From Dimorphilus gyrociliatus (Eukaryota; Animalia; Annelida), in the NCBI GenBank assembly GCA_904063045.1, contig CAJFCJ010000015.1:558001-622000 (forward strand): a stretch of DNA of 64,000 nt, in the 5' to 3' direction. The position numbers were made by a program, and so were the translations under genes. Of the stretch, positions 11 to 62,631 are shown piece by piece (position 1 is the stretch's first letter; each line of letters begins with the position of its first letter). The notes under the pieces were generated by a model. That model had not been told where the DNA came from. It saw only the letters and a program-made list of their open reading frames with translations, and made no database searches.

Positions 11-2476
11 ATGAAAGATTATAAAATTCGGCATGGTATAGCCCAAAAATGTAAATATGATATTAGACGATTATCTTGCATGAAAGACGCCGGAAAGCAC
101 ACTTATCAGCAAGTTAGATTGGCACATATTTTACAATGCTTGGAAAATGCTTTAGAGGAGCCTGAGGAATCCCTAAGACCAGAGTGTTTAGTCGAAGTTC
201 GAAATTTAAAGAGAGAATTATTAGAAGACTATTCAATAACACCAGAAATAATGCTAAATTGTCAATCAGAGATTAAAGGAATTTGCAAGGGTTTGGAAAG
301 AAATGGCAAAACATTACACTGTCTTATGAAAGCATCTATTCTTAATGAAAATCATCGTGGAGTAAATGAAACTTGTTTTGAAGCTTTAAAGAAATTAATG
401 GATATAGCAAGACCAAATTCTGATTTTAAATTAGATCCTCTTTTACACGAAAGTTGTCAGTCTGTTGCGGAAAAGAGTTGTTCTGATATTCAAAGTTCCA
501 GAGGTGTTTATGAATGTCTTCTTTATAAAATTGGAACTAAAGATATGACCGAAGTTTGCGAAGCTAGACTGATTGAAATGGAATACTTTGCACAAAGAAA
601 TATCCGGTTACAGCCAACACTATATCGCGTTTGCTATGGAGATATAAAAAAGCTTTGTAATCCATCAGAAACAAGCGACTTAACACCATCTCATATCTTT
701 GCTTGTCTATACCAAAAACGACGTGGCGCAGATGAAGTCGAAAAACTATCGCCCGATTGTGAACACGGAATAAAAAAAACTATGCGCTTGCGTGCCCTAA
801 AAGTCCAATTGGATCCGGAACTGGAAGAGTATTGTATAAAAGACCTGAGTTTACATTGTGGTGACAAAAGAGGAATAGGTGAAGAAATGAACTGTCTTAT
901 TGAAAAATACACGTTTCTTTCTAACACGACATGTAAAGAGGCTATAAAAGAACGTTTAGCTGATAGAATGGAGGATCCATTGGATTTGAATCAAATATTC
1001 GCTAGAGCTTGTGCTCCAATGGTAGCTAAATTTTGCCATGATATTGTTGAAGAAGAAATTATAACTTGCTTAATCAAACACAAAACAAAGGAGGATATGG
1101 ATGAGAAGTGTGCTAGTGGAATTGAGCATCATCAAATTTTAACATTAAGAGATTATCGGTTTTCAAGAAAATTCAAGCTCTCTTGCTCAAACTCAGTTCA
1201 AACTATTTGCGCAAACATAGTTAAAAAAAATGAAGTAATTCATTGTTTGTCGGAAGCTATTCATAAAGATACACTACTTGATAAACAGCAAAGAGTTGAT
1301 AAAGCATGTCGTAACCAAATTAAATTTGAAATATTATCTAGATCTGAAAGTATTAAACTTGACGCACGTTTACAAGAAAGTTGTCGGATGGATATACAAA
1401 AGAATTGCAAAGGAGTTAAGCCTGGCAGGGGACGAGTTCTTCGATGTCTTAAAAAACATATTGACAATTTGATGGATAATTGTTATAAGTATGTGTTTCA
1501 ACAAGAAAAAGATGAAAGTAATATAGGAGAGGTTGCTGATTATAATTTTATGCGTGCGTGTGACGGCATGATCAAATTTCATTGTAATAATCAAAGGCGC
1601 AACATTTTAAAATGCCTGAGAAGATTTAAAAATGAACCTGATTTCGATAGTGAATGCCGCAATGCCATACTTGAAAAACAAGAAGAACGCTCGAGATATA
1701 TAGAATTGCAGCCAGGTCTGCATAAAGCGTGCCAATCTGATATAAAAAAGCTGTGCTCTGGAATTTTAGCAGATAAGCACACAAAAGATTCGATGATTGG
1801 TGGTATGGTGATGAATTGCTTGAGGAAAAATTTTAGAATGAAAAAATTGTCGAGATCGTGTAAAGATGAAGTTGCAGTTGTTATTAGACAATCAGCTATG
1901 GACTATAAACAAGACCCTATTTTGGCTAAACATTGCGAAGTACATATAAAACAATTATGTCTGGAAGAATTATCTGGCGATTTAGATGCCGACGGAGCAG
2001 TTGTTAACTGTTTAAAAAAGAATTTCCAAAATGGAAATTTGCAAAAAGTTGACCCAAGAGACACTAATCTATGTGTTCAAGAAGTTGTTCGCGTACTCAG
2101 TGAAAGCAAAATTGATATTCATTTTGATCCTATTTTATATAATGCTTGCTCGGAAGAATTGAGACATCATTGTCCTGCTGTTTCAAGAGGAGAAGGTCGT
2201 CTTTTGTCTTGTCTCTTAAATGTTTTAAATGAAAAAAATGAAAATCTTGCTGACAAGTGCAAAAAAGAATTGGAATCAAGAAAAGAGATGTGGGAACTAG
2301 CCGCTGAGCCTCAAGTTGCTCAAAGCTTACCTGAGATGGCTCAACATGTTTCAATTAGTCCAGTTAGGAATCAATTAATGGTGTTTGGTCTGCTAATAAT
2401 TGGAGTCATTTTCCTTGGTGGTCTTTTCTGTGGGAGAGTAACCAAAAGAGTAGCTCAAGTAGCCAAAGACAAGTAA
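11..2476 (+). CDS. GLG1: Golgi apparatus protein 1 (cysteine-rich FGF receptor / ESL-1 / MG-160), C-terminal part; frame is open to the window edge, so 5' truncated
   Basis: Tandem Cys-rich GLG1 repeats (e.g. DP.L...C..DI...C, 'GRVLRCLK', 'GRLLSCL'), a C-terminal TM helix and the tail GRVTKRVAQVAKDK (human RITKRVTRELKDR). One uninterrupted 2.47 kb ORF. Confidence 0.95.
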   Translation: MKDYKIRHGIAQKCKYDIRRLSCMKDAGKHTYQQVRLAHILQCLENALEEPEESLRPECLVEVRNLKRELLEDYSITPEIMLNCQSEIKGICKGLERNGKTLHCLMKASILNENHRGVNETCFEALKKLMDIARPNSDFKLDPLLHESCQSVAEKSCSDIQSSRGVYECLLYKIGTKDMTEVCEARLIEMEYFAQRNIRLQPTLYRVCYGDIKKLCNPSETSDLTPSHIFACLYQKRRGADEVEKLSPDCEHGIKKTMRLRALKVQLDPELEEYCIKDLSLHCGDKRGIGEEMNCLIEKYTFLSNTTCKEAIKERLADRMEDPLDLNQIFARACAPMVAKFCHDIVEEEIITCLIKHKTKEDMDEKCASGIEHHQILTLRDYRFSRKFKLSCSNSVQTICANIVKKNEVIHCLSEAIHKDTLLDKQQRVDKACRNQIKFEILSRSESIKLDARLQESCRMDIQKNCKGVKPGRGRVLRCLKKHIDNLMDNCYKYVFQQEKDESNIGEVADYNFMRACDGMIKFHCNNQRRNILKCLRRFKNEPDFDSECRNAILEKQEERSRYIELQPGLHKACQSDIKKLCSGILADKHTKDSMIGGMVMNCLRKNFRMKKLSRSCKDEVAVVIRQSAMDYKQDPILAKHCEVHIKQLCLEELSGDLDADGAVVNCLKKNFQNGNLQKVDPRDTNLCVQEVVRVLSESKIDIHFDPILYNACSEELRHHCPAVSRGEGRLLSCLLNVLNEKNENLADKCKKELESRKEMWELAAEPQVAQSLPEMAQHVSISPVRNQLMVFGLLIIGVIFLGGLFCGRVTKRVAQVAKDK

Positions 2477-26195: not shown

Positions 26196-27254
26196 TTATG
26201 AACTAGTTTTATTTGTCTCTTCCAATTGTTCGCTAATAGGTCCAAGATAAACGGTAACGTTTTGATCGAGCGCTATTGTTGATTGTACTGCAACTGGCTG
26301 ACTTTGTGCAGGTGTCATCCTTCGACATTCTGCTGTGACGGACGTTTTCGCTCGTTTTTTCAAGATGGCTGGACAGAAATCAAGCATAGCCGTTCGGATT
26401 TCCGTTGACATTGCACCATAAACTAGGGGTGAAGAGCACGTAGCTACGCCATAGAAGACACTTACTATGACATATATTTCCGCCGAGAGAGTATTAGCCT
26501 TATCGAGATTCCTGACTATTGAATAGGGTATAAAGCCACCCAGAATGACAAGAAAAATGACTCCGAACATCTTGGTTATCTGCAATTCACGTTGTTGAAG
26601 AGCATTTGGTGATGACATGCGCTTTGAGACCTTCACTACCGAAATAAAAATTGCTATGTAACAGCAGACGACAACGATGCAGGGAATAAGAACTTGAACA
26701 ACTGTTACCGAAACAATTCTCCCGAAAGATGTAGGCTTAAGAATGCAGCGCAATAATTTAGCCACGTAGACAGACGATTTAAGATCAATTCCAGGTAAAG
26801 CGGCAGCGAATGGTATCAATCTAGCAGCGATTAAAACGAAGGCAACATAAGATTTCTTTGACATCCTTTTATAAACCGTATTGTGGACGACAACTATATA
26901 TCGGTGTATACCAATTAAAGCTGTATGCCATAGGCTACATCCAACAAAAGCAATGGTAAATTCCGGATTTAATTTACATAAAACATCCCCTGCAACCCAG
27001 GATCTCATCACGTAAGATTGGACAATCAGTACAACAACCAAACAAAGAGTTAATAAATCGTTTAAAGCCAATGAAGCGATAAACAAGTTGATAATGTTTC
27101 GATATTGCCTTTGAGAAACAACGGCCGCTATTAACCATACATTACCTAAAATACCTTCAATTAGAAATACGGTCATTACACTAGCTCCGATAGTCGTTCC
27201 GATTGCTGTCGGCCTCTCGTCATTTGCCTCAGTTGAGTTATTATAATACGACAT
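26196..27254 (-). CDS. Class A GPCR, Moody/Tre1/GPR84/melatonin-receptor-related, intronless
   Basis: Seven hydrophobic segments; GN (TM1), LALND (TM2), TM3/ECL2 cysteines, 'IGIHRY', 'ELQITKMFGVIF' (Moody-like EWRITKM), 'SPLVY'; N-glycosylation site NNST. Confidence 0.9.
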   Translation of the reverse strand: MSYYNNSTEANDERPTAIGTTIGASVMTVFLIEGILGNVWLIAAVVSQRQYRNIINLFIASLALNDLLTLCLVVVLIVQSYVMRSWVAGDVLCKLNPEFTIAFVGCSLWHTALIGIHRYIVVVHNTVYKRMSKKSYVAFVLIAARLIPFAAALPGIDLKSSVYVAKLLRCILKPTSFGRIVSVTVVQVLIPCIVVVCCYIAIFISVVKVSKRMSSPNALQQRELQITKMFGVIFLVILGGFIPYSIVRNLDKANTLSAEIYVIVSVFYGVATCSSPLVYGAMSTEIRTAMLDFCPAILKKRAKTSVTAECRRMTPAQSQPVAVQSTIALDQNVTVYLGPISEQLEETNKTSS

Positions 27255-31564: not shown

Positions 31565-32802
31565 AGTGGCGCGAGGTTTCGAGAGCAAGGGTCAACGTAC
31601 AAATTAAAGCCTAGAATCTGGTAATCATCCGATCAAACTATAACATAACCTACCACTGTATGGTGTTTATGAACGAATATATGTTTTTCTAACATAAAAA
31701 ACGTATATTTTTTTATCCAAGCGCCAAAATATTACAGTGGTTTCAAAGTATTTTCACTTTATCAATATATATATATATATTATACTAATATACTGAATTG
31801 AAAAGTATAAATCTATACATATACAGTATATATATACACTATATATATATATATATATATATATATGTAAAATACTTTATCTATACTACAAAAACATCCA
31901 GTTATATACTTACAAAATTAAAAATATGATATGGTCTACAGAGGATTTTCTATCATTGCCAATTTTCTTTCACTACATTTTCTTAACCAGCATTCAACCT
32001 CGATCTATAATAGGCGATCATAGAGGCATCAACCGTAGATTAACGCCTAAAAAGGCGTCTACTAAACGAAAATGGCTTACAAATTGGACAAAGAAATTCC
32101 TTAAAAGAAATGAACAAGATGACGATGAGCATGGTTCGGTTTTAAAGAAATATAAAGCTCGTGTAAGTATATTTGATATAAAATAGAAATTGTACTAATA
32201 TTCGTCTTATAGTCTTTATTTAAACCTTTTATCTAATTTTTTTTACTGATTCTTTTCCTTATCTCTTTCTATCTTACCTATCTATTTGTCTAGCTACATT
32301 TTTTTTTGCACTTTGCGTGTACATACCCTTCTTATTTATTCTACCTTCCTTCTCTCCTTCTCTCTCTCTCTTTCCTAATACTCTTTTTTTTTTCATGCAC
32401 CCTATCAATTCCTTTTTATTTTTTCTAAGCGAAAACAATCCGCTTTTAAATAATTGCAGTACGCTCTTTACAAAAGACTGCCTTTGAAAACGCTCTCCAG
32501 ATGGTGGGGAGCTTTTCACAGTTTGGAATTACCGGTATGGTTAAGAACTCCCGCCTTTAAACTATACATATGGATGTTCGGCTGCAAGTTAGACGAAGCA
32601 AAAGTACAAGATTTAAGGCGATACAGAAATTTATGTGAATTCTTTCGGAGAAGTTTAAAGCCAGGCATTCGACCAGTCGATGGAGCCTTTCACTTAGTAA
32701 GAAAATATATAACTTTTTTTATTTAAACTATATGTTTTCGTCTATTTAAACTGTTTCTTTCTCTCTGTCTATCTGTCTGTCTATCTGTCTCTCTCTCTCT
32801 CC

Positions 32803-32833
<31 letters not shown>

Positions 32834-33974
32834 GCTTCCGTAAGCATAACAACAACCGCCCTTTCCTGTTTTTTTTCCTTTTTTCCCTGATTATAATTTA
32901 CTATATTTACTAATATTTCTAGACTAGCCCTTGTGATGGAAAAATCCTTAGCGTTGGCCGGGTTAATGAAGACGGATTGTTGGAGCAAGTGAAGGGAGTG
33001 ACGTATTCCTTAAAGCAATTCATAGGCACCGAAATATGTGCAAAGAATAAACATTTTCTGTACCACTGTATTATCTATCTAGCCCCAGGAGATTACCACC
33101 GTTTTCATTCTCCAACCGATTGGACTGTGAAAGAACGACGCCATTTTCCTGGTATGATTAACGCCTATTTTCTCTTTCTCTCTATTCTATTCCCTTATAT
33201 CTAATTTCTTTGCTACAACGCACATACACATACATACTCATTCTCTAGCTTAGTCAATCATTCATTTATTCATTCTTTCGTCCACCCCGCTCTCTCTCTC
33301 TCTCTCTCTCTGCGTCCCTTTATTTCTTTCTCCCCTACGTTTTACCTTATTTTTTCTCATGCAACTATTTATTTCTATATACAGAACAGTATAGCACTCT
33401 TATACATATTGTAGAGAGCGTCTCTCTCTTAACTTTTTTCCCATTAAACTAACATAAAAAAGTTCTTGGTGTATAATTTTTAACAGCTATTAAATGATGT
33501 GCAAATAATTTTTAGGACAGTTATTCAGCGTTAATCCCGAAGTGGCAAAGTGGCTTCAGGGAATATTTAACTTCAATGAACGAGTGGTTTACGACGGTAG
33601 ATGGCGTTATGGCCGTTTCATTATGATTCCTGTTGGAGCAACAAATGTAGGGTCGATAAATGTCTATATAGATCCGGTAGGAGAAATGACTTTAATTAAT
33701 CTTATTCATTTAATCAGTTTCTTAGTCGGATAAAATATGAATTAAACAGATGCTACAAACAAATGTTAAATCGGTAACTGAACCATCGAGCAAGACATTC
33801 TATAACCGAAAAGGAAAAGGTATCGATGTTAAAAAAGGCGAATTGTTTGGTGATTTTAACCTTGGTTCAACAATTGTTTTGGTTTTCGAGGCACCAGAAA
33901 AATTTCGATTTAAGATATCGGCTGATCAAAAGGTCAAGTACGGTCAACCTCTGGGAAAACTATGCAAGATTTGA
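31565..33974 (+). CDS. PISD: Phosphatidylserine decarboxylase proenzyme; core exons from 32460, 5' end unresolved
   Basis: '[15 protein letters not shown]', 'SPCDGKIL', '[10 protein letters not shown]', '[13 protein letters not shown]', 'NERVV', 'VGATNVGSI' and the autocleavage motif 'FNLGSTIVL'. Confidence 0.93.
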
Positions 33975-34338
33975 CAAAAATTATGCAACAAAGTTTAAAA
34001 AAAAAAAAGTCCAACAGATGGCAGATTAATCGAAAAAAAGACAAAATAAAAGAAATTTAGTATCCTTGGCAAGCAAAATATTTAATTAAGATGATATGAC
34101 AATAGATAGTAGTTATGAATTAACTATATTCAGTATATCGTATATCTTTCATTGTTTGAATATGCTCATTAAGTCTTCTTCGCTAGCATATACGTCTCGT
34201 TAAATGGGTTAATTAGCTTTCTGATTGGATAAAGGTACTCTTTATCTTTTATGAATTTCACATAAAACTCAACGAATTATACTCATAAAGTAATAATGGC
34301 AGTATAAATATACAAATAAAAAATTAATAAATTAGTTT

Positions 34339-34341
<3 letters not shown>

Positions 34342-34373
<32 letters not shown>
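34342..34373. repeat. (GA)n microsatellite
   Basis: Pure GA repeat. Similar GA/CT tracts near 13965, 32780, 33290, 46207 and 48280. Confidence 0.9.
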
Positions 34374-34377
<4 letters not shown>

Positions 34378-34807
34378 CGTGTTTGTGCATCTGTATGTGT
34401 ATGTGTGCATGTACGTTTTAGTGAGTGTGTGAGAGATCATAAGATATAAAGAATTTCTGTCTATATTTCCTGTACCTACTTTAATCTCCTAAGAAGGGAA
34501 TTACATACACGTGTCAATTTAATAAGTTTCATTCTAAAGAAAGAAAAAAAAGTGCGTCTATCCGACAGCGTAATTACTGAATAAGCCGATAGATTTACTA
34601 ACAATGAAAGGAGTTGGAAAGATTTCTATAATCCTTCGTCCATTAACACCCTCCGTCTACTCGCTAGTTGATATAATCTATGATAATGTATATATATATT
34701 TTATGCGAATAGACGCCACAAAAAATATCCCTAAAAACAAATACGCATACATACATTCAGAACGGTTTGGAAGCTAGCTAGAAATACAAACAAAAAAAAT
34801 CAAAGAC

Positions 34808-35065
34808 ATGAAAATCGTCTTTCCGATATCGATTGCACTTTTGGCAATTATTTCCTTAAGTATGGCCAATGAATCATCAATGGAGGATAATGAAGAACTT
34901 TACGATAGTGGACTCGCCAAGAGAATTCCACCACTTCATCTACTTGGTAAAAAGGACAACAGTATCGACGGTTTAATATATGATAAAAGAGCTCCACCCC
35001 TCTATCTCTTGGTAAAGAAAATTCCACCTGTTCACCTTCTGAATGGTTATAGAAATAAAAAATAA
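34808..35065 (+). CDS. Putative neuropeptide precursor (85 aa)
   Basis: Signal peptide MKIVFPISIALLAIISLSMA, acidic spacers, and three related peptides bounded by basic pairs: KR-IPPLHLL-GKK, KR-APPLYLLV-KK, KK-IPPVHLLNGYR. Confidence 0.85.
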   Translation: MKIVFPISIALLAIISLSMANESSMEDNEELYDSGLAKRIPPLHLLGKKDNSIDGLIYDKRAPPLYLLVKKIPPVHLLNGYRNKK

Positions 35066-36457
35066 GGTAAAAATTTAGTTACCTGTAACAATACGTTGTT
35101 TTGTCACTGTATCATTTATTTTCATAGTACTAATAAATATTATTTGTCATATAGAACTTTTATCTATATAATAAAAATATAACTAAAAGTTCAAAAGACA
35201 GAGTAGGAAGAAGATATAACTCGAAAGATAGAGAGGGAGAGAGAAAGTAAAAGAATGGATGGGAATGGATGAAGGGGAAAAAAAAACAGTCAAAGTTAGC
35301 GTAGGGATAAGATAGAAGTAGTTAAAAAAAGGAAAGGAAAGAGAAAGGTTAAGGGAAGAGGAAGTCTTTTAATTAAAAGAATAAAATATTACCTACGTTT
35401 TAGTTTCTTATTCGAATATTTTCTTAATGAAAAAAGAAAGAGACTATAAAAATAAATAAAATAACTATTCTTCTACTCCTTCCGAATACTTCTATGAATA
35501 ATAAATAAAACGGAAAGTATACGGGATCTTTTAACCGTAATATACTAATAAGGGCAACTAGAACACAAGCCCCTTACAGACAGTTTTTTCTATTAACGTC
35601 TTATTAGATATTATAGTATTTCGTATTAGACGCTTTAAAAAGTCTAGAGTATATTGTAAATGATTGATAATTCTTCGTCATATTACCCTTAGCCTTTCAT
35701 TAAGTAGAATTAGATGGAGAAAATATTAACTTTCTTATTATTATTATTATCTGTGATAAATACTAATTTATGCAATTTTTTTGACTGAGCCTAAAGGGAG
35801 AAGCGCATGCTGTTTATTTATTCAATGATCACATGTTCATTGGAAGATAAAATAATACAGAAAAAAAGGGTCGAAATTAAATTACGAAGTAGATTACAGG
35901 ATTAATAATAGACTTTTGAACGAGTTATAAATTTAAAAAAGAGATTTATTACCTTTGTTTTTCATTTAAAAAAATGTATAAGATAAATACTTTATATTTC
36001 CCATTTTTAATAGGGCGAAAATAAGGAGATATGAATTAAGCGATTTCGGGAAAATATGTATTCGAAAATGAGGACACTATTACGAAAGATGACGCAATAT
36101 TCAATGTATTGCTAATCTTCACAACCTTTTTGTTTATCCTTCCCTCACTCCCACCTTTTATTCACTCTATTTAAAAGTTCAATAAAATTCAACCAAAATA
36201 AAAATTCAATATAACCACTGATTGCTTTCTAGAGCCATCTTTTGGCTATTACTTTAATATAATTTTCTATAATCTATTCAAGTATGTATCTAGAAAAAAA
36301 ATCTTATCCTCTAAAGATAAGATTGCCCTTAATTTGACATTTCATAATCTAAAAGACATTCGTAAAGACGGCAAGAATTTTTTGCGGAGGTGATTTTTCG
36401 GCTCATTTCAATATATTGCCTAATTAGATAATTAATTATAGACAATAGAAGATAAAA

Positions 36458-37106
36458 ATGGCAGAAAGCTCGGAACAAACTACCGTTATCATTGCGATTG
36501 ATAAGAGTAAAATTGCCGAAAAGATGTTCGACTGTAAGTTGTCTAGCATTCTACTATTTAATTGTTATACTATATTATCGCTTCTATGCTATTTAAACAT
36601 GGAATATCATATCAATTAAAGAATGTAAATAGTCCTATTTAATGTTAATGGATTTGTTTAGGGTATGTTGATCGACTTCATAAGGCCAAGTCAGACATTT
36701 ATCTTGTCTATTGTGTTGAAGGAGCTTCCTTGGCAACTTCCGGTGAATTATAAACAAAATTAAACAAATATGTTTCAAAGTAAATAGTGTTTAAACTTGT
36801 ACAACAGAGGGAATGCGTCTATCCGAAGGGGAATGGCAAAAAATGTATAGAAAAGAGATGGAAGAGAAAAAGTTTATCGAGGAAAAGTATGAAAAGATAG
36901 CAAAGGAGAAAAACATAGCAATAAAATTTGATATTCGCTATGGAAAACCAGGGGAAGCTATCGTATCGGCCGCCAAGGACTTAAGAGCATCTTTCGTAAT
37001 GATGGGAACTAGAGGAATGGGTACGATAAGACGTACTATCCTAGGTTCTGTTTCTGATTATGTTGTTCATCATTGTCACTGTCCAGTTATAGTACATAGA
37101 GTATAG
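36458..37106 (+). CDS. Universal stress protein (UspA family), 3 exons
   Basis: N-terminal 'TVIIAID' strand, 'GKPGEAIV', ATP-binding motif G-x2-G-x9-GS in 'MGTRGMGTIRRTILGSVSDYVVHHCHCPVIV'. Confidence 0.93.
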
Positions 37107-37528: not shown

Positions 37529-38317
37529 TCATTTTTGGAAGCAAATATGATTTTCATATGCTGCCCTTAATTGAGCTAAGGAGGCTTTTAGATCTCTGTT
37601 TTCTTTGGCCAATTTTTCATTTTTGATCAGCTCATTTTTCAGTTGCTGAATAAAAGAAGAGAAATTAGCTTAACAGTTTTATCGTAAAGTTTTATAAAAG
37701 TATAAATATAAGTTACTTACTTCTTCAATTTGTTTAGTTTCATCCTTTTTCTTGTTACGAAACTTTTTCGCCGCTTTTCTATTTGAAGCCTTTCTTCTCT
37801 CAAGTCTCTCTTGTTCAGACAACTTCCTCGTTCCTGTTTGAGGTGTATCAATAATGCTCTGTTCCTTTTTATTCTGTTGTGGCTGTTCTATTCTTTGAAG
37901 GTTATATTCTGGTGTTTCTTCCATTTCTAGCTTTTCTTGTTTCAACTGAAGCAGAGTGTTATTCCGTTCTTTCGGAGGAAGTTGATCACTATCCCAAGTT
38001 TCGTATTGAATTTGATCAAGGTTATTTGGAGTTCGTTGTTCATCTTGTGGAAGTGGTGTAAAAGTATTCGAGTTAGGATCGTTGATATAGTTCATAATAA
38101 AATCCAAATCAGCATTGAATATGACATTATCATCATTTAAATTTTCCGGATAGCTCGTGCTCATGTTCTCGCTGTCTCTTATTCCAGTAGTTGTCTGGAG
38201 AGGACTTAATACACCTTCGAGAAAATCAGTGTCAGAACAATTGTTTTTATTCTCTAATTGCCCATTAGGGCAGTGGGAAAATAATGTTGTGTCCATGTTA
38301 ATATGGACACACCTCAT
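37529..38317 (-). CDS. bZIP transcription factor, ATF3/Fos-like but divergent; at least 2 coding exons, start tentative
   Basis: Basic region 'ERRKASNRKAAKKFRNKKK' spliced to zipper exon 'QLKNELIKNEKLAKENRDLKASLAQLRAAYENHICFQK*'. Confidence 0.8.
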
Positions 38318-39323
38318 TGTATGATGACTTCGATCAATATTTAGCGAATCTGTACAGGAAAAAATAATGATAGTGATAATAAGTAAAATGAGAAATAGGA
38401 ACATCACATTTATATATTGTAATTTGACAATAAAAAGTAGACTGATAGCAGATTAGAGATAAGAGAAGAATAACCATATAAATAACGGGTTATGTTTTTC
38501 ATTTTAACGATAATAAGAATAATATAACATATTATATTCTTATATATATATTTATATATAATAGAATATAGTATAAAATTAATATTTTATCTATTAATTA
38601 GAAAGTTAAGTAGACTTTAAAAAACAAAAAAACTTTGATTTTGCAGAAAGATAGATACTATATTATAAAATAACCACGTGTCTATTTACGGTATTTTTAG
38701 GAAACCGGCTTTCACAATAAAACGCAATAATCGAAGAGATAGTTGCTGTAAAAATATATACATGTACTAATGTAATAATAAAATACCTTATTAATACAAA
38801 AATATGTAGAACAATATATTACGATTTCTCGATATAAGCAAACTGTAAGAGTTCTGTTAGCTGGTTAAATTTTTCTAGCTAGTCTAATCGCTACGAGCTA
38901 TTGCCGTAAAATGAAACGGAAATGTGTAGTAGAAATTTTCGTTATGAATAGATGAATATTCATTTGACATATGGTTTTATTAGAAGGCCAATATATAGGC
39001 AAGTTTAAGCGTGCCCGTTAAGGAATGTACAAGAATAAGTCATAAGAGTTCTTTAAAAAATTAACCTAATCAATTAAATGTAAAAGATTGAATAAATAAA
39101 TAAGAAACTGTTGTTGATATAATATGATATATATATAATATATATAACACTTTACAATCTCTTATGTCCTATCTTAATGTATATGTATAAAAGTATAAAG
39201 CGTGTCTTCATATACATTTATAATTATAACTAAGAAAAATTTGGAAGCGTTCCAAACAGGCTTTAAAGTTTATCTATAGTTTTCATTCTAATTACCGATT
39301 CGTATCTGTCAATTTTTTTTACT

Positions 39324-61000: not shown

Positions 61001-61861
61001 GAGCATGCTTTGCTCTATTCATCATATATAATAAACCAAGCCCCTATTTACAAGATAGGAATCAACTGATAAATTTTCATTGAAATATATGAAGTTGAAA
61101 TTTGCAGCGCTTTTTTTAATCTCGTTATTGTTCTAAACTAAATTTATGTATAATTAAGTTGATAAGAAATCAATGGACTATATTTTACATTTTTAAAAAC
61201 CGTATAATCGATTGCAGAAGCTCGTGATCACTTAGAGTAGAAGTTATATAATTTTTACATTGTGTATTTGTACCGATCGTGCGTAAAATATTCAATTTAG
61301 TGTTCTAATTATATTTGCTGAGCGGACATCATTTAAAGCGTCAGCTGTTTATTATGCGTGTCCTGAATCTATTGCATATATATAGAATATATAGTTATAG
61401 GAATACATACAATATATATATATAAATATATATATTTATAGATACATAGATATTTTGTGTGTATTTGAGTATGATTGTGGTTTGTGAGGAGAAAAAAAAA
61501 GCAATTTGCTGTGCATCAAAACAGAAAATGCACCAACAGCGCAATTATTTAAATTGAATAAATGAGCAGTTATACGTGTGCGTATGCTTACATATATATG
61601 CATGTATTGTTGTATTTATGTATATGTACTTAGCCGATTAGGGCCTACGTATGTTTTTTTTGCGTCTTTAAGCGTATCATATTCGATTCTATAACAATTG
61701 CGATAATAACGAAAATACATGCTTATTACATGGTCTATATATATATAACGCGGCTTATGTATACATTTTTCAAAGCACAGAATATATGTATATATATATA
61801 TATATATAAATGTATACATATATTTGTATATAAAGATATCCACAGATATATAAATATATAT

Positions 61862-61905
<44 letters not shown>

Positions 61906-62631
61906 ATGCATAAAGAAGGTGTAATTGCCCGGAGTAAAACGATAATTATTTGCATATAGAGAGCGCAAAGTAATTATATAAACTAACCTATTTTTGGCAG
62001 CCGCCGCTCTATCTCGTTGCCGTCTATTTTTGAACCAATTGCCAACTTGTGTCGGCGTGAGTCCGGTAGCTTGGGCTAGTTCTCGCTTCTTGGCTGGGTT
62101 TGGATAAGGATCTTGTAGGTACCATTCTCGCAACAAGCTCCTTGTTCTTTCCTTGAAACAGTGTGTTTTCTGCTCCCCATCCCATATTGTGCGAGGGAGT
62201 GGATACTTTTTACGTACACGGTATTTATCGACTGGTCCAAGAGGTCTACCGCGGAGACGTTCGGCTTCTTGATAATGCGCCTCGAGCCACATAGCTTGCA
62301 ATTTCGGGTGCGAATCCTTGTTGAATTTATAATTCTCCAGAATGTGGTATAAGTCCTTGAAATTTCCTGTATGGAAAGCGACTAAAGAGCGAGCTCTGAG
62401 GATTGATTCGTGCTTATTTAGAGCCTCCATCGCTGCAGGGTTTACTGGAAGGGACCAGAGAAATCTCCCTAACCGTTCAATATCACCGGATTCCTCCAAA
62501 ACTTCGCACACTTGAGCTATTTGAGGCGGGGTAAAATTGATGGGAAGAACCGATGGGGCCGCCATAAAATTTCTGCAATGTGCCAAAAAGTTAGCTGTCG
62601 CACTCTGCTGTTCTAGTCGAGAAGCATCCAT
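58078..62631 (-). CDS. SIX3/6: Six3/6 (Optix) homeobox transcription factor; exons 61988-62631 and 58078-58630 (~398 aa)
   Basis: SIX domain plus homeodomain with the Six3/6-diagnostic QKTH tetrapeptide ('[12 protein letters not shown]...[17 protein letters not shown]'); phase-2 intron joins to [10 protein letters not shown]... Confidence 0.97.

Follow-up and report, generated by a model that had tools for sequence, protein, structure and literature searches.

Gene content and layout of the locus

The window (the whole 64-kb stretch of Dimorphilus gyrociliatus DNA that was analysed, with a G+C content of about 30%) holds a short open reading frame (ORF) that lies alone in a 2.5-kb gap between two forward-strand genes: a multi-exon phosphatidylserine-decarboxylase-like gene on its 5' side (labelled by eye from its sequence, a single exon having been scanned without a Pfam match) and the gene of a universal stress protein on its 3' side (Table 1). 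The ORF occupies a single exon, runs from ATG to TAA and encodes 85 amino acids; as the nearest in-frame stop 5' of it is found at position 34775, no longer frame enters it from that side. Translation bore out, in coordinates as well as in sequence, the anatomy that a sequence-only reading of the same DNA had described (an N-terminus resembling a signal peptide, followed by three related peptides set among acidic spacers). Following Met-Lys, the protein presents a 15-residue hydrophobic core ending in SMA/NE (the stroke marks the predicted cut), an acidic spacer, KR-IPPLHLLG-KK, a second spacer, KR-APPLYLLV-KK and IPPVHLLNGY-RNKK, after which comes the stop codon. Likewise as described before, the first copy is followed by GKK, the third copy reads IPPVHLLNGY (the GKK and the NGY being kept in the orthologues introduced below), and the second copy has Val in place of Gly, the codon of this invariant Val69 (GTA) being one base away from GGA.

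Table 1. Coordinates of the peptide gene, its parts and the other features noted in the window
Feature	Position	Strand	Remarks
Golgi-apparatus-protein-1-like ORF	11..2476	+	long, single exon; 11 Cys-rich FGFR repeats
Rhodopsin-class GPCR gene	26196..27254	-	intronless, 352 aa; Pfam 7tm_1, E = 1.8e-28; 7.5 kb upstream of peptide gene
Phosphatidylserine-decarboxylase-like gene (5' neighbour)	32454..33974	+	stop at 33974, in the last exon
(GA)n/(CT)n microsatellite	34283..34440		~400 nt 5' of peptide gene; comparable tracts at other places in the window
TATA-like hexamer	34689..34694	+	~115 nt 5' of ATG; weak evidence, AT-rich DNA
Whole coding sequence of peptide gene	34808..35065	+	85 codons plus TAA; single copy; two 85-aa orthologues
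Predicted signal peptide, residues 1-20 MKIVFPISIALLAIISLSMA	34808..34867	+	predicted cut after SMA; 13/20 columns invariant
Deposited model P0001	34862..35065	+	begins at Met19
Acidic spacer 1, residues 21-37 NESSMEDNEELYDSGLA	34868..34918	+	8/17 columns invariant
KR + IPPLHLL + Gly (amide donor) + KK	34919..34954	+	predicted IPPLHLL-amide; 12/12 columns invariant
Splice-like site TTG/GTAAAA	34944..34950	+	codons of LL-G-KK
Spacer 2, residues 50-59 DNSIDGLIYD	34955..34984	+	columns 50-58: only 2/9 invariant
KR + APPLYLLV + KK	34985..35020	+	predicted non-amidated octapeptide; 11/12 columns invariant
Splice-like site TTG/GTAAAG	35010..35016	+	codons of LL-V-KK
IPPVHLLNGY, copy 3	35021..35050	+	C-terminal NGY extension; 9/10 columns invariant
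Basic tail RNKK + stop codon	35051..35065	+	orthologue tails KNKA, KSKA
AATAAA	35132..35137	+	67 nt past stop codon; second at 35170; weak evidence, AT-rich DNA
Universal stress protein gene (3' neighbour)	36458..37106	+	Pfam Usp, E = 1.6e-20; ATG at 36458
bZIP protein exon	37679..38407	-	
Six-class homeobox gene	61735..62631	-	SIX1_SD plus homeodomain

The motif shared by the three peptides is confined to this ORF. Within the six-frame translation of the window, PP[LV][HY]LL occurs three times, each time inside the ORF, and a DNA pattern for [KR][KR]xPP[LV][HY]LL was matched three times in the 78-Mb genome (77,897,245 bases in 349 contigs), again exclusively here (the reversed pattern, which served as control, gave one match). 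Neither a protein search nor a degenerate DNA pattern detected a paralogue of the gene in its own genome. The codons at the LL-G-KK and LL-V-KK junctions resemble 5' splice sites (Table 1), and an alternative spliced isoform that makes use of them is possible; the unspliced reading was used for the ORF because the peptide located 3' of the splice-like sites is conserved at the protein level.

Conservation in two orthologues

A word-index protein search with the ORF product recovered three proteins: P0001 (discussed below together with the start codon) and two orthologues from Logan assemblies, P0002 and P0003, whose sources are most likely other dinophilid annelids, for which genomic and transcriptomic reads have been made public. 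Both orthologues are 85 amino acids long (matching the window protein at 75% and 72% identity, respectively, and each other at 80%), and both keep all three peptides together with the dibasic sites KR/KK/KR/KK. In the alignment of the three sequences (window protein, P0002 and P0003), the peptides and cleavage sites (KR-IPPLHLLG-KK, KR-[AV]PPLYLLV-KK and [IM]PPVHLLNGY) are invariant in 32 of 34 columns, as against 12 of 31 in the rest of the propeptide, made up of the spacers and of a tail with one invariant column in four (Fisher p = 2e-6). Furthermore, comparison of the three repeats with one another over their seven core codons yielded pS values of 0.63-0.81 and pN values of 0.07-0.27; with pN well below pS, the copies are old and held at the amino-acid level. 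These observations mark a real gene in which purifying selection acts on the peptides, and the combination of conserved peptides and variable spacers is the signature of processed peptide precursors. The standard prohormone architecture claimed by the sequence-only reading has a real anatomy behind it, to which the alignment adds that the peptides are selectively conserved. As each copy is separately invariant, the C-terminal half of the protein may alternatively work as one unit.

The residues that set the copies apart are conserved as well: Val69 in APPLYLLV and the NGY extension that closes the third copy are invariant in all three orthologues, which argues that the predicted mixture of amidated and free peptides is old and maintained, and that it does not reflect a recent slip from Gly to Val. 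Of the mixture proposed earlier, then, the residues that define it stand as an ancient trait and no one-base accident, while amidation itself keeps the status of a prediction. The dibasic site of the tail (RNKK in the window protein) is not conserved in the orthologues.

These data also bear on the notion that the ORF is a chance frame or a non-coding conserved element, a notion to which its shortness, its AT-rich intergenic setting and the lack of a Pfam match lend some weight. In view of orthologous ORFs of the same length, of conservation that operates at the amino-acid level (the repeats being near-saturated at synonymous sites) and of the fact that all three motif matches of the 78-Mb genome fall in one ORF, we regard it as effectively excluded.

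Start codon and predicted signal peptide

The third protein recovered by the search, P0001 (NCBI/UniRef, 67 amino acids), which is located on a contig of 1.43 Mb, is 100% identical to the ORF product from Met19 onward and is the deposited model of the same gene; beginning at Met19, it has no signal peptide. By contrast, each of the three orthologues opens, in the 85-residue form, with an n-region that contains Lys2, a hydrophobic core of 15 residues (mean Kyte-Doolittle value over residues 3-17 of 2.5-3.0 across the three, and of 2.75 in the window protein) and SMA or SMG at positions -3 to -1, features from which a signal peptide is predicted by composition and by the -3/-1 rule. The 18 codons located 5' of Met19 are open, begin with Met-Lys (the start Met being conserved) and stay strongly hydrophobic in both orthologues. 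We favour the 85-residue form as the more likely product, and consider the deposited start to be probably mis-annotated, because the hydrophobic core encoded 5' of Met19 is maintained within an open frame that begins with Met-Lys, 13 of the first 20 columns being invariant.

If the deposited model were correct, the gene would encode a small cytosolic protein with proline-rich linear motifs, translated from Met19. Such a reading could draw on the sequence PPLY in the second copy, which fits the PPxY pattern of WW-domain ligands, and on the provenance of P0001, as the deposited annotation leaned heavily on transcript assemblies and had its transcription starts refined with CAGE data; moreover, Met19 is invariant in all three sequences, and a transcription start situated between the two ATGs would, if so, yield a protein without a signal peptide. 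We nevertheless find it highly improbable, given the conserved hydrophobic extension described above, the presence of the Tyr in only one of the copies, and the alternation of variable spacers with invariant peptides enclosed by dibasic pairs, which would be unexpected in a cytosolic motif protein.

Relation to known peptide families

Taken as a whole, the 85-residue protein resembles generic annelid multi-copy pro-neuropeptides in being a small precursor with a predicted signal peptide, acidic spacers, repeats bounded by KR or KK and a Gly-KK motif, and in having conserved peptides and variable spacers. The precursors published for Dimorphilus are often 76-100 amino acids in length and show frequent GKK or GKR (Supplementary file 5, PMC7854359). 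It departs from this published set in that xPP[L/V][H/Y]LL fits no listed family and in that the amidation Gly is present in only one of the three copies.

Searches for relatives were negative throughout. Pfam assigned no family to the ORF product, and a HMMER profile built from the three orthologues, run with no length filter against 1.84 billion cluster representatives, reported at E <= 0.001 only their own cluster. Among JGI metagenome contigs, 361 stretches matched the pattern and none of them encodes a relative. The neuropeptide list published for D. gyrociliatus, covered in full (Supplementary file 5, PMC7854359), contains neither the gene nor its motif; a text search of supplements on Platynereis precursors and the Platynereis secretome disclosed no xPP[LV][HY]LL precursor, the matches to PPLH, PPVH and PPLY found there being rejected since they fall in unrelated proteins; and a literature search brought up no neuropeptide paper with PPLHLL, IPPLHLL, PPVHLL, PPLYLL, HLLamide or LLamide. 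The family was thus seen only in the D. gyrociliatus genome and in two related assemblies, within collections whose coverage of annelids is uneven.

At the level of short motifs, two known systems come close, and it may be asked whether the peptides are a very divergent member or offshoot of one of them. The first is myomodulin. The published D. gyrociliatus myomodulins 1 and 2 were reproduced by ORFs of the genome (one peptide DNA pattern for each, with one match each), so that two canonical myomodulin genes are placed elsewhere in it, on contigs C25 (myomodulin 1) and C5 (myomodulin 2). Myomodulin 2 holds LPPLPRI-G-K and myomodulin 1 several copies of APLPRL-G (PMC7854359). With these minor peptides (LPPLPRI-amide and APLPRL-amide), those of the window share a start in PPL or PL, their length, an aliphatic C-terminus and the GKK/GKR grammar, and BLASTP aligned IPPLHLLGK with LPPLPRIGK at 5/9 identity. 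They differ in lacking the endings -MLRM, -MLRL, -PRL and -PRI-amide, as well as the general myomodulin ending -[ML][RQ][LM]-amide, and their penultimate residue is neither Arg nor Gln; they terminate instead in -HLL-amide (predicted), -YLLV and -HLLNGY. BLASTP against the two Dimorphilus myomodulin exons gave E values of 0.26 and 0.07, which, as single pairwise comparisons that reflect mostly cleavage-site grammar, are not significant.

The second is the PPLPamide pro-neuropeptide of Platynereis dumerilii (GenBank KF515950), an orphan with no orthologues reported outside Platynereis (PMC3890597), which was compared by eye on the published text. Its copies (FIPPLPGKK, E[ET]PPLPGKR and ..PPLPNKR) unite Gly and non-Gly (Asn) forms in one precursor (PMC3890597). 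An x-P-P-L core placed right after a dibasic site (FIPPLP-G-KK against IPPLHLL-G-KK) and the mixture of Gly and non-Gly copies are common to both. On the other hand, PPLPamide ends in Pro-amide immediately after PPL, whereas the peptides of the window add [H/Y]-L-L and in no copy end in PPLP; the PPLPamide precursor has ~330 amino acids, at least 10 copies and long structured spacers, which are unrelated to those of the 85-residue one. PPLPamide was also not reported by the profile search of the 1.84 billion representatives. In the D. gyrociliatus genome, no multi-copy PPLP[GN][KR] gene was found, only scattered singletons; two PPLPN-K matches were rejected as PPLPamide-type, their ORFs not being precursor-like.

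A derivation from either family would accord with the 5/9 identity to myomodulin 2, with the xPPL core, GKK/GKR and mixed copies of PPLPamide and with the lack of a separate multi-copy PPLP[GN][KR] gene in this genome. We deem such a derivation improbable in light of the non-significant E values, the differing endings, spacers that share nothing, a profile search that came back empty outside the family's own cluster and the fact that Dimorphilus already possesses two canonical myomodulin genes; neither link is supported well enough for filing the peptides under a named family. As far as its sequence and the searches go, the gene is best read as that of a candidate pro-neuropeptide that is lineage-restricted and belongs to an unnamed family. 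In line with this, the earlier suggestion of a lineage-specific or undescribed family stands, its relatives being the two orthologues only and the published Dimorphilus list lacking it; BLAST, motif and profile searches gave no clear hit to a named family. The accompanying statement that the peptides match none of the bilaterian or lophotrochozoan families considered there agrees with the negative outcome of the Pfam, profile, list and literature searches, and requires amendment in one respect, namely that the motif-level look-alikes PPLPamide and PPLPRIamide/APLPRLamide had not been considered.

Proposed processing and function

In the processing scheme that we propose, signal peptidase would cut after Ala20, prohormone convertases would cleave after K38R39, K48K49, K60R61 and K70K71, and the basic residues would then be trimmed by carboxypeptidase. 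Peptidylglycine alpha-amidating monooxygenase would convert IPPLHLL-Gly into IPPLHLL-amide, while APPLYLLV and IPPVHLLNGY would stay free acids, the latter perhaps with extra tail residues, as the orthologues end in KNKA or KSKA and have no dibasic site at that point. The mature peptides would presumably act on a putative receptor. Secretion, cleavage, amidation, neuronal origin and receptor signalling are all predictions made for this precursor. What the protein does display are the features of the prohormone class: short repeated peptides between dibasic sites, a Gly amide donor (the canonical Gly-dibasic signal, Gly-KK, follows the first copy and is present in 1/3 copies only) and the conservation of peptides and sites over variable spacers. 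The ESM Atlas model of the precursor is disordered (pLDDT 0.28), and its feature neighbours in the Atlas include the precursors of PDH, DH31, protachykinin, allatostatin and neuropeptide S, all with scores below 0.9 and to be regarded as leads only.

A precursor processed in this fashion at dibasic sites and secreted might serve outside the nervous system, for example as a peptide of glands, epidermis, reproduction (pheromone-like) or defence; anatomy and conservation speak to secretion and processing and not to cell type, and neither Pfam nor the profile search showed homology to a neuropeptide family. We judge a non-neuronal role unlikely, although not negligible, since these short, hydrophobic peptides carry no charge and so do not resemble typical cationic antimicrobial peptides, since a Gly-KK signal together with strictly conserved 7-10-mers is most typical of receptor ligands, and since the size and grammar of the precursor match those of published Dimorphilus neuropeptide precursors. 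The reading that we consider probable is that this real gene, with one exon and one copy in the genome, encodes a small secreted pro-peptide, which we take as a candidate pro-neuropeptide or peptide hormone.

Whether the xPP[L/V][H/Y]LL peptides truly act as bioactive neuropeptides and form a family, unnamed until now, that only Dinophiliformia possess is a further and more demanding proposition, which we put forward tentatively and hold to be slightly short of probable. If it is true, a miniature annelid whose neuropeptide complement has been called canonical (PMC7854359) also carries lineage-specific signalling peptides, and the division, ancient and conserved, between one amidated form and two free acids may address different receptors. 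The gene would add one conserved, lineage-restricted candidate ligand to the inventory of a miniature annelid used for studies of genome and nervous-system reduction and would correct a public gene model that is devoid of a signal peptide; it also suggests that the D. gyrociliatus neuropeptide catalogue is incomplete for short orphan precursors. Orphan precursors restricted to one lineage are frequent among annelids, with more than twenty in Platynereis (PMC3890597), so that the gene would interest a specialist without coming as a surprise. In practical terms, it offers three peptides that can be synthesised for raising antibodies, for bath application and for the deorphanisation of receptors.

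Processing machinery and other genes

The machinery that the proposed scheme would call upon is plausibly present, given that 7B2 figures in the published D. gyrociliatus list beside dozens of precursors with Gly-KR/KK, such as the MLQL-GKK of myomodulin 1 (PMC7854359), and that Cu2_monooxygen domains (PHM/DBH-type) exist in the genome. The matches to this domain are many and occur in tandem clusters (C5:2135587-2145757; C2:3215970-3220169 and 3497125-3499687; C224:8903-11503), which include a 1023-residue open frame with two domains; copper monooxygenase genes thus appear to have expanded locally.

As for the other genes of the window, the closest solved relatives of the intronless GPCR (Table 1) are the melatonin receptors MT2 (E = 6e-20) and MT1 (E = 4e-19), followed by NPY1R; it was rejected as a receptor for the peptides, being melatonin-receptor-like and offering no reason for linking the two. 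The Golgi-apparatus-protein-1-like, bZIP and Six genes are ordinary and fit a compact animal genome.
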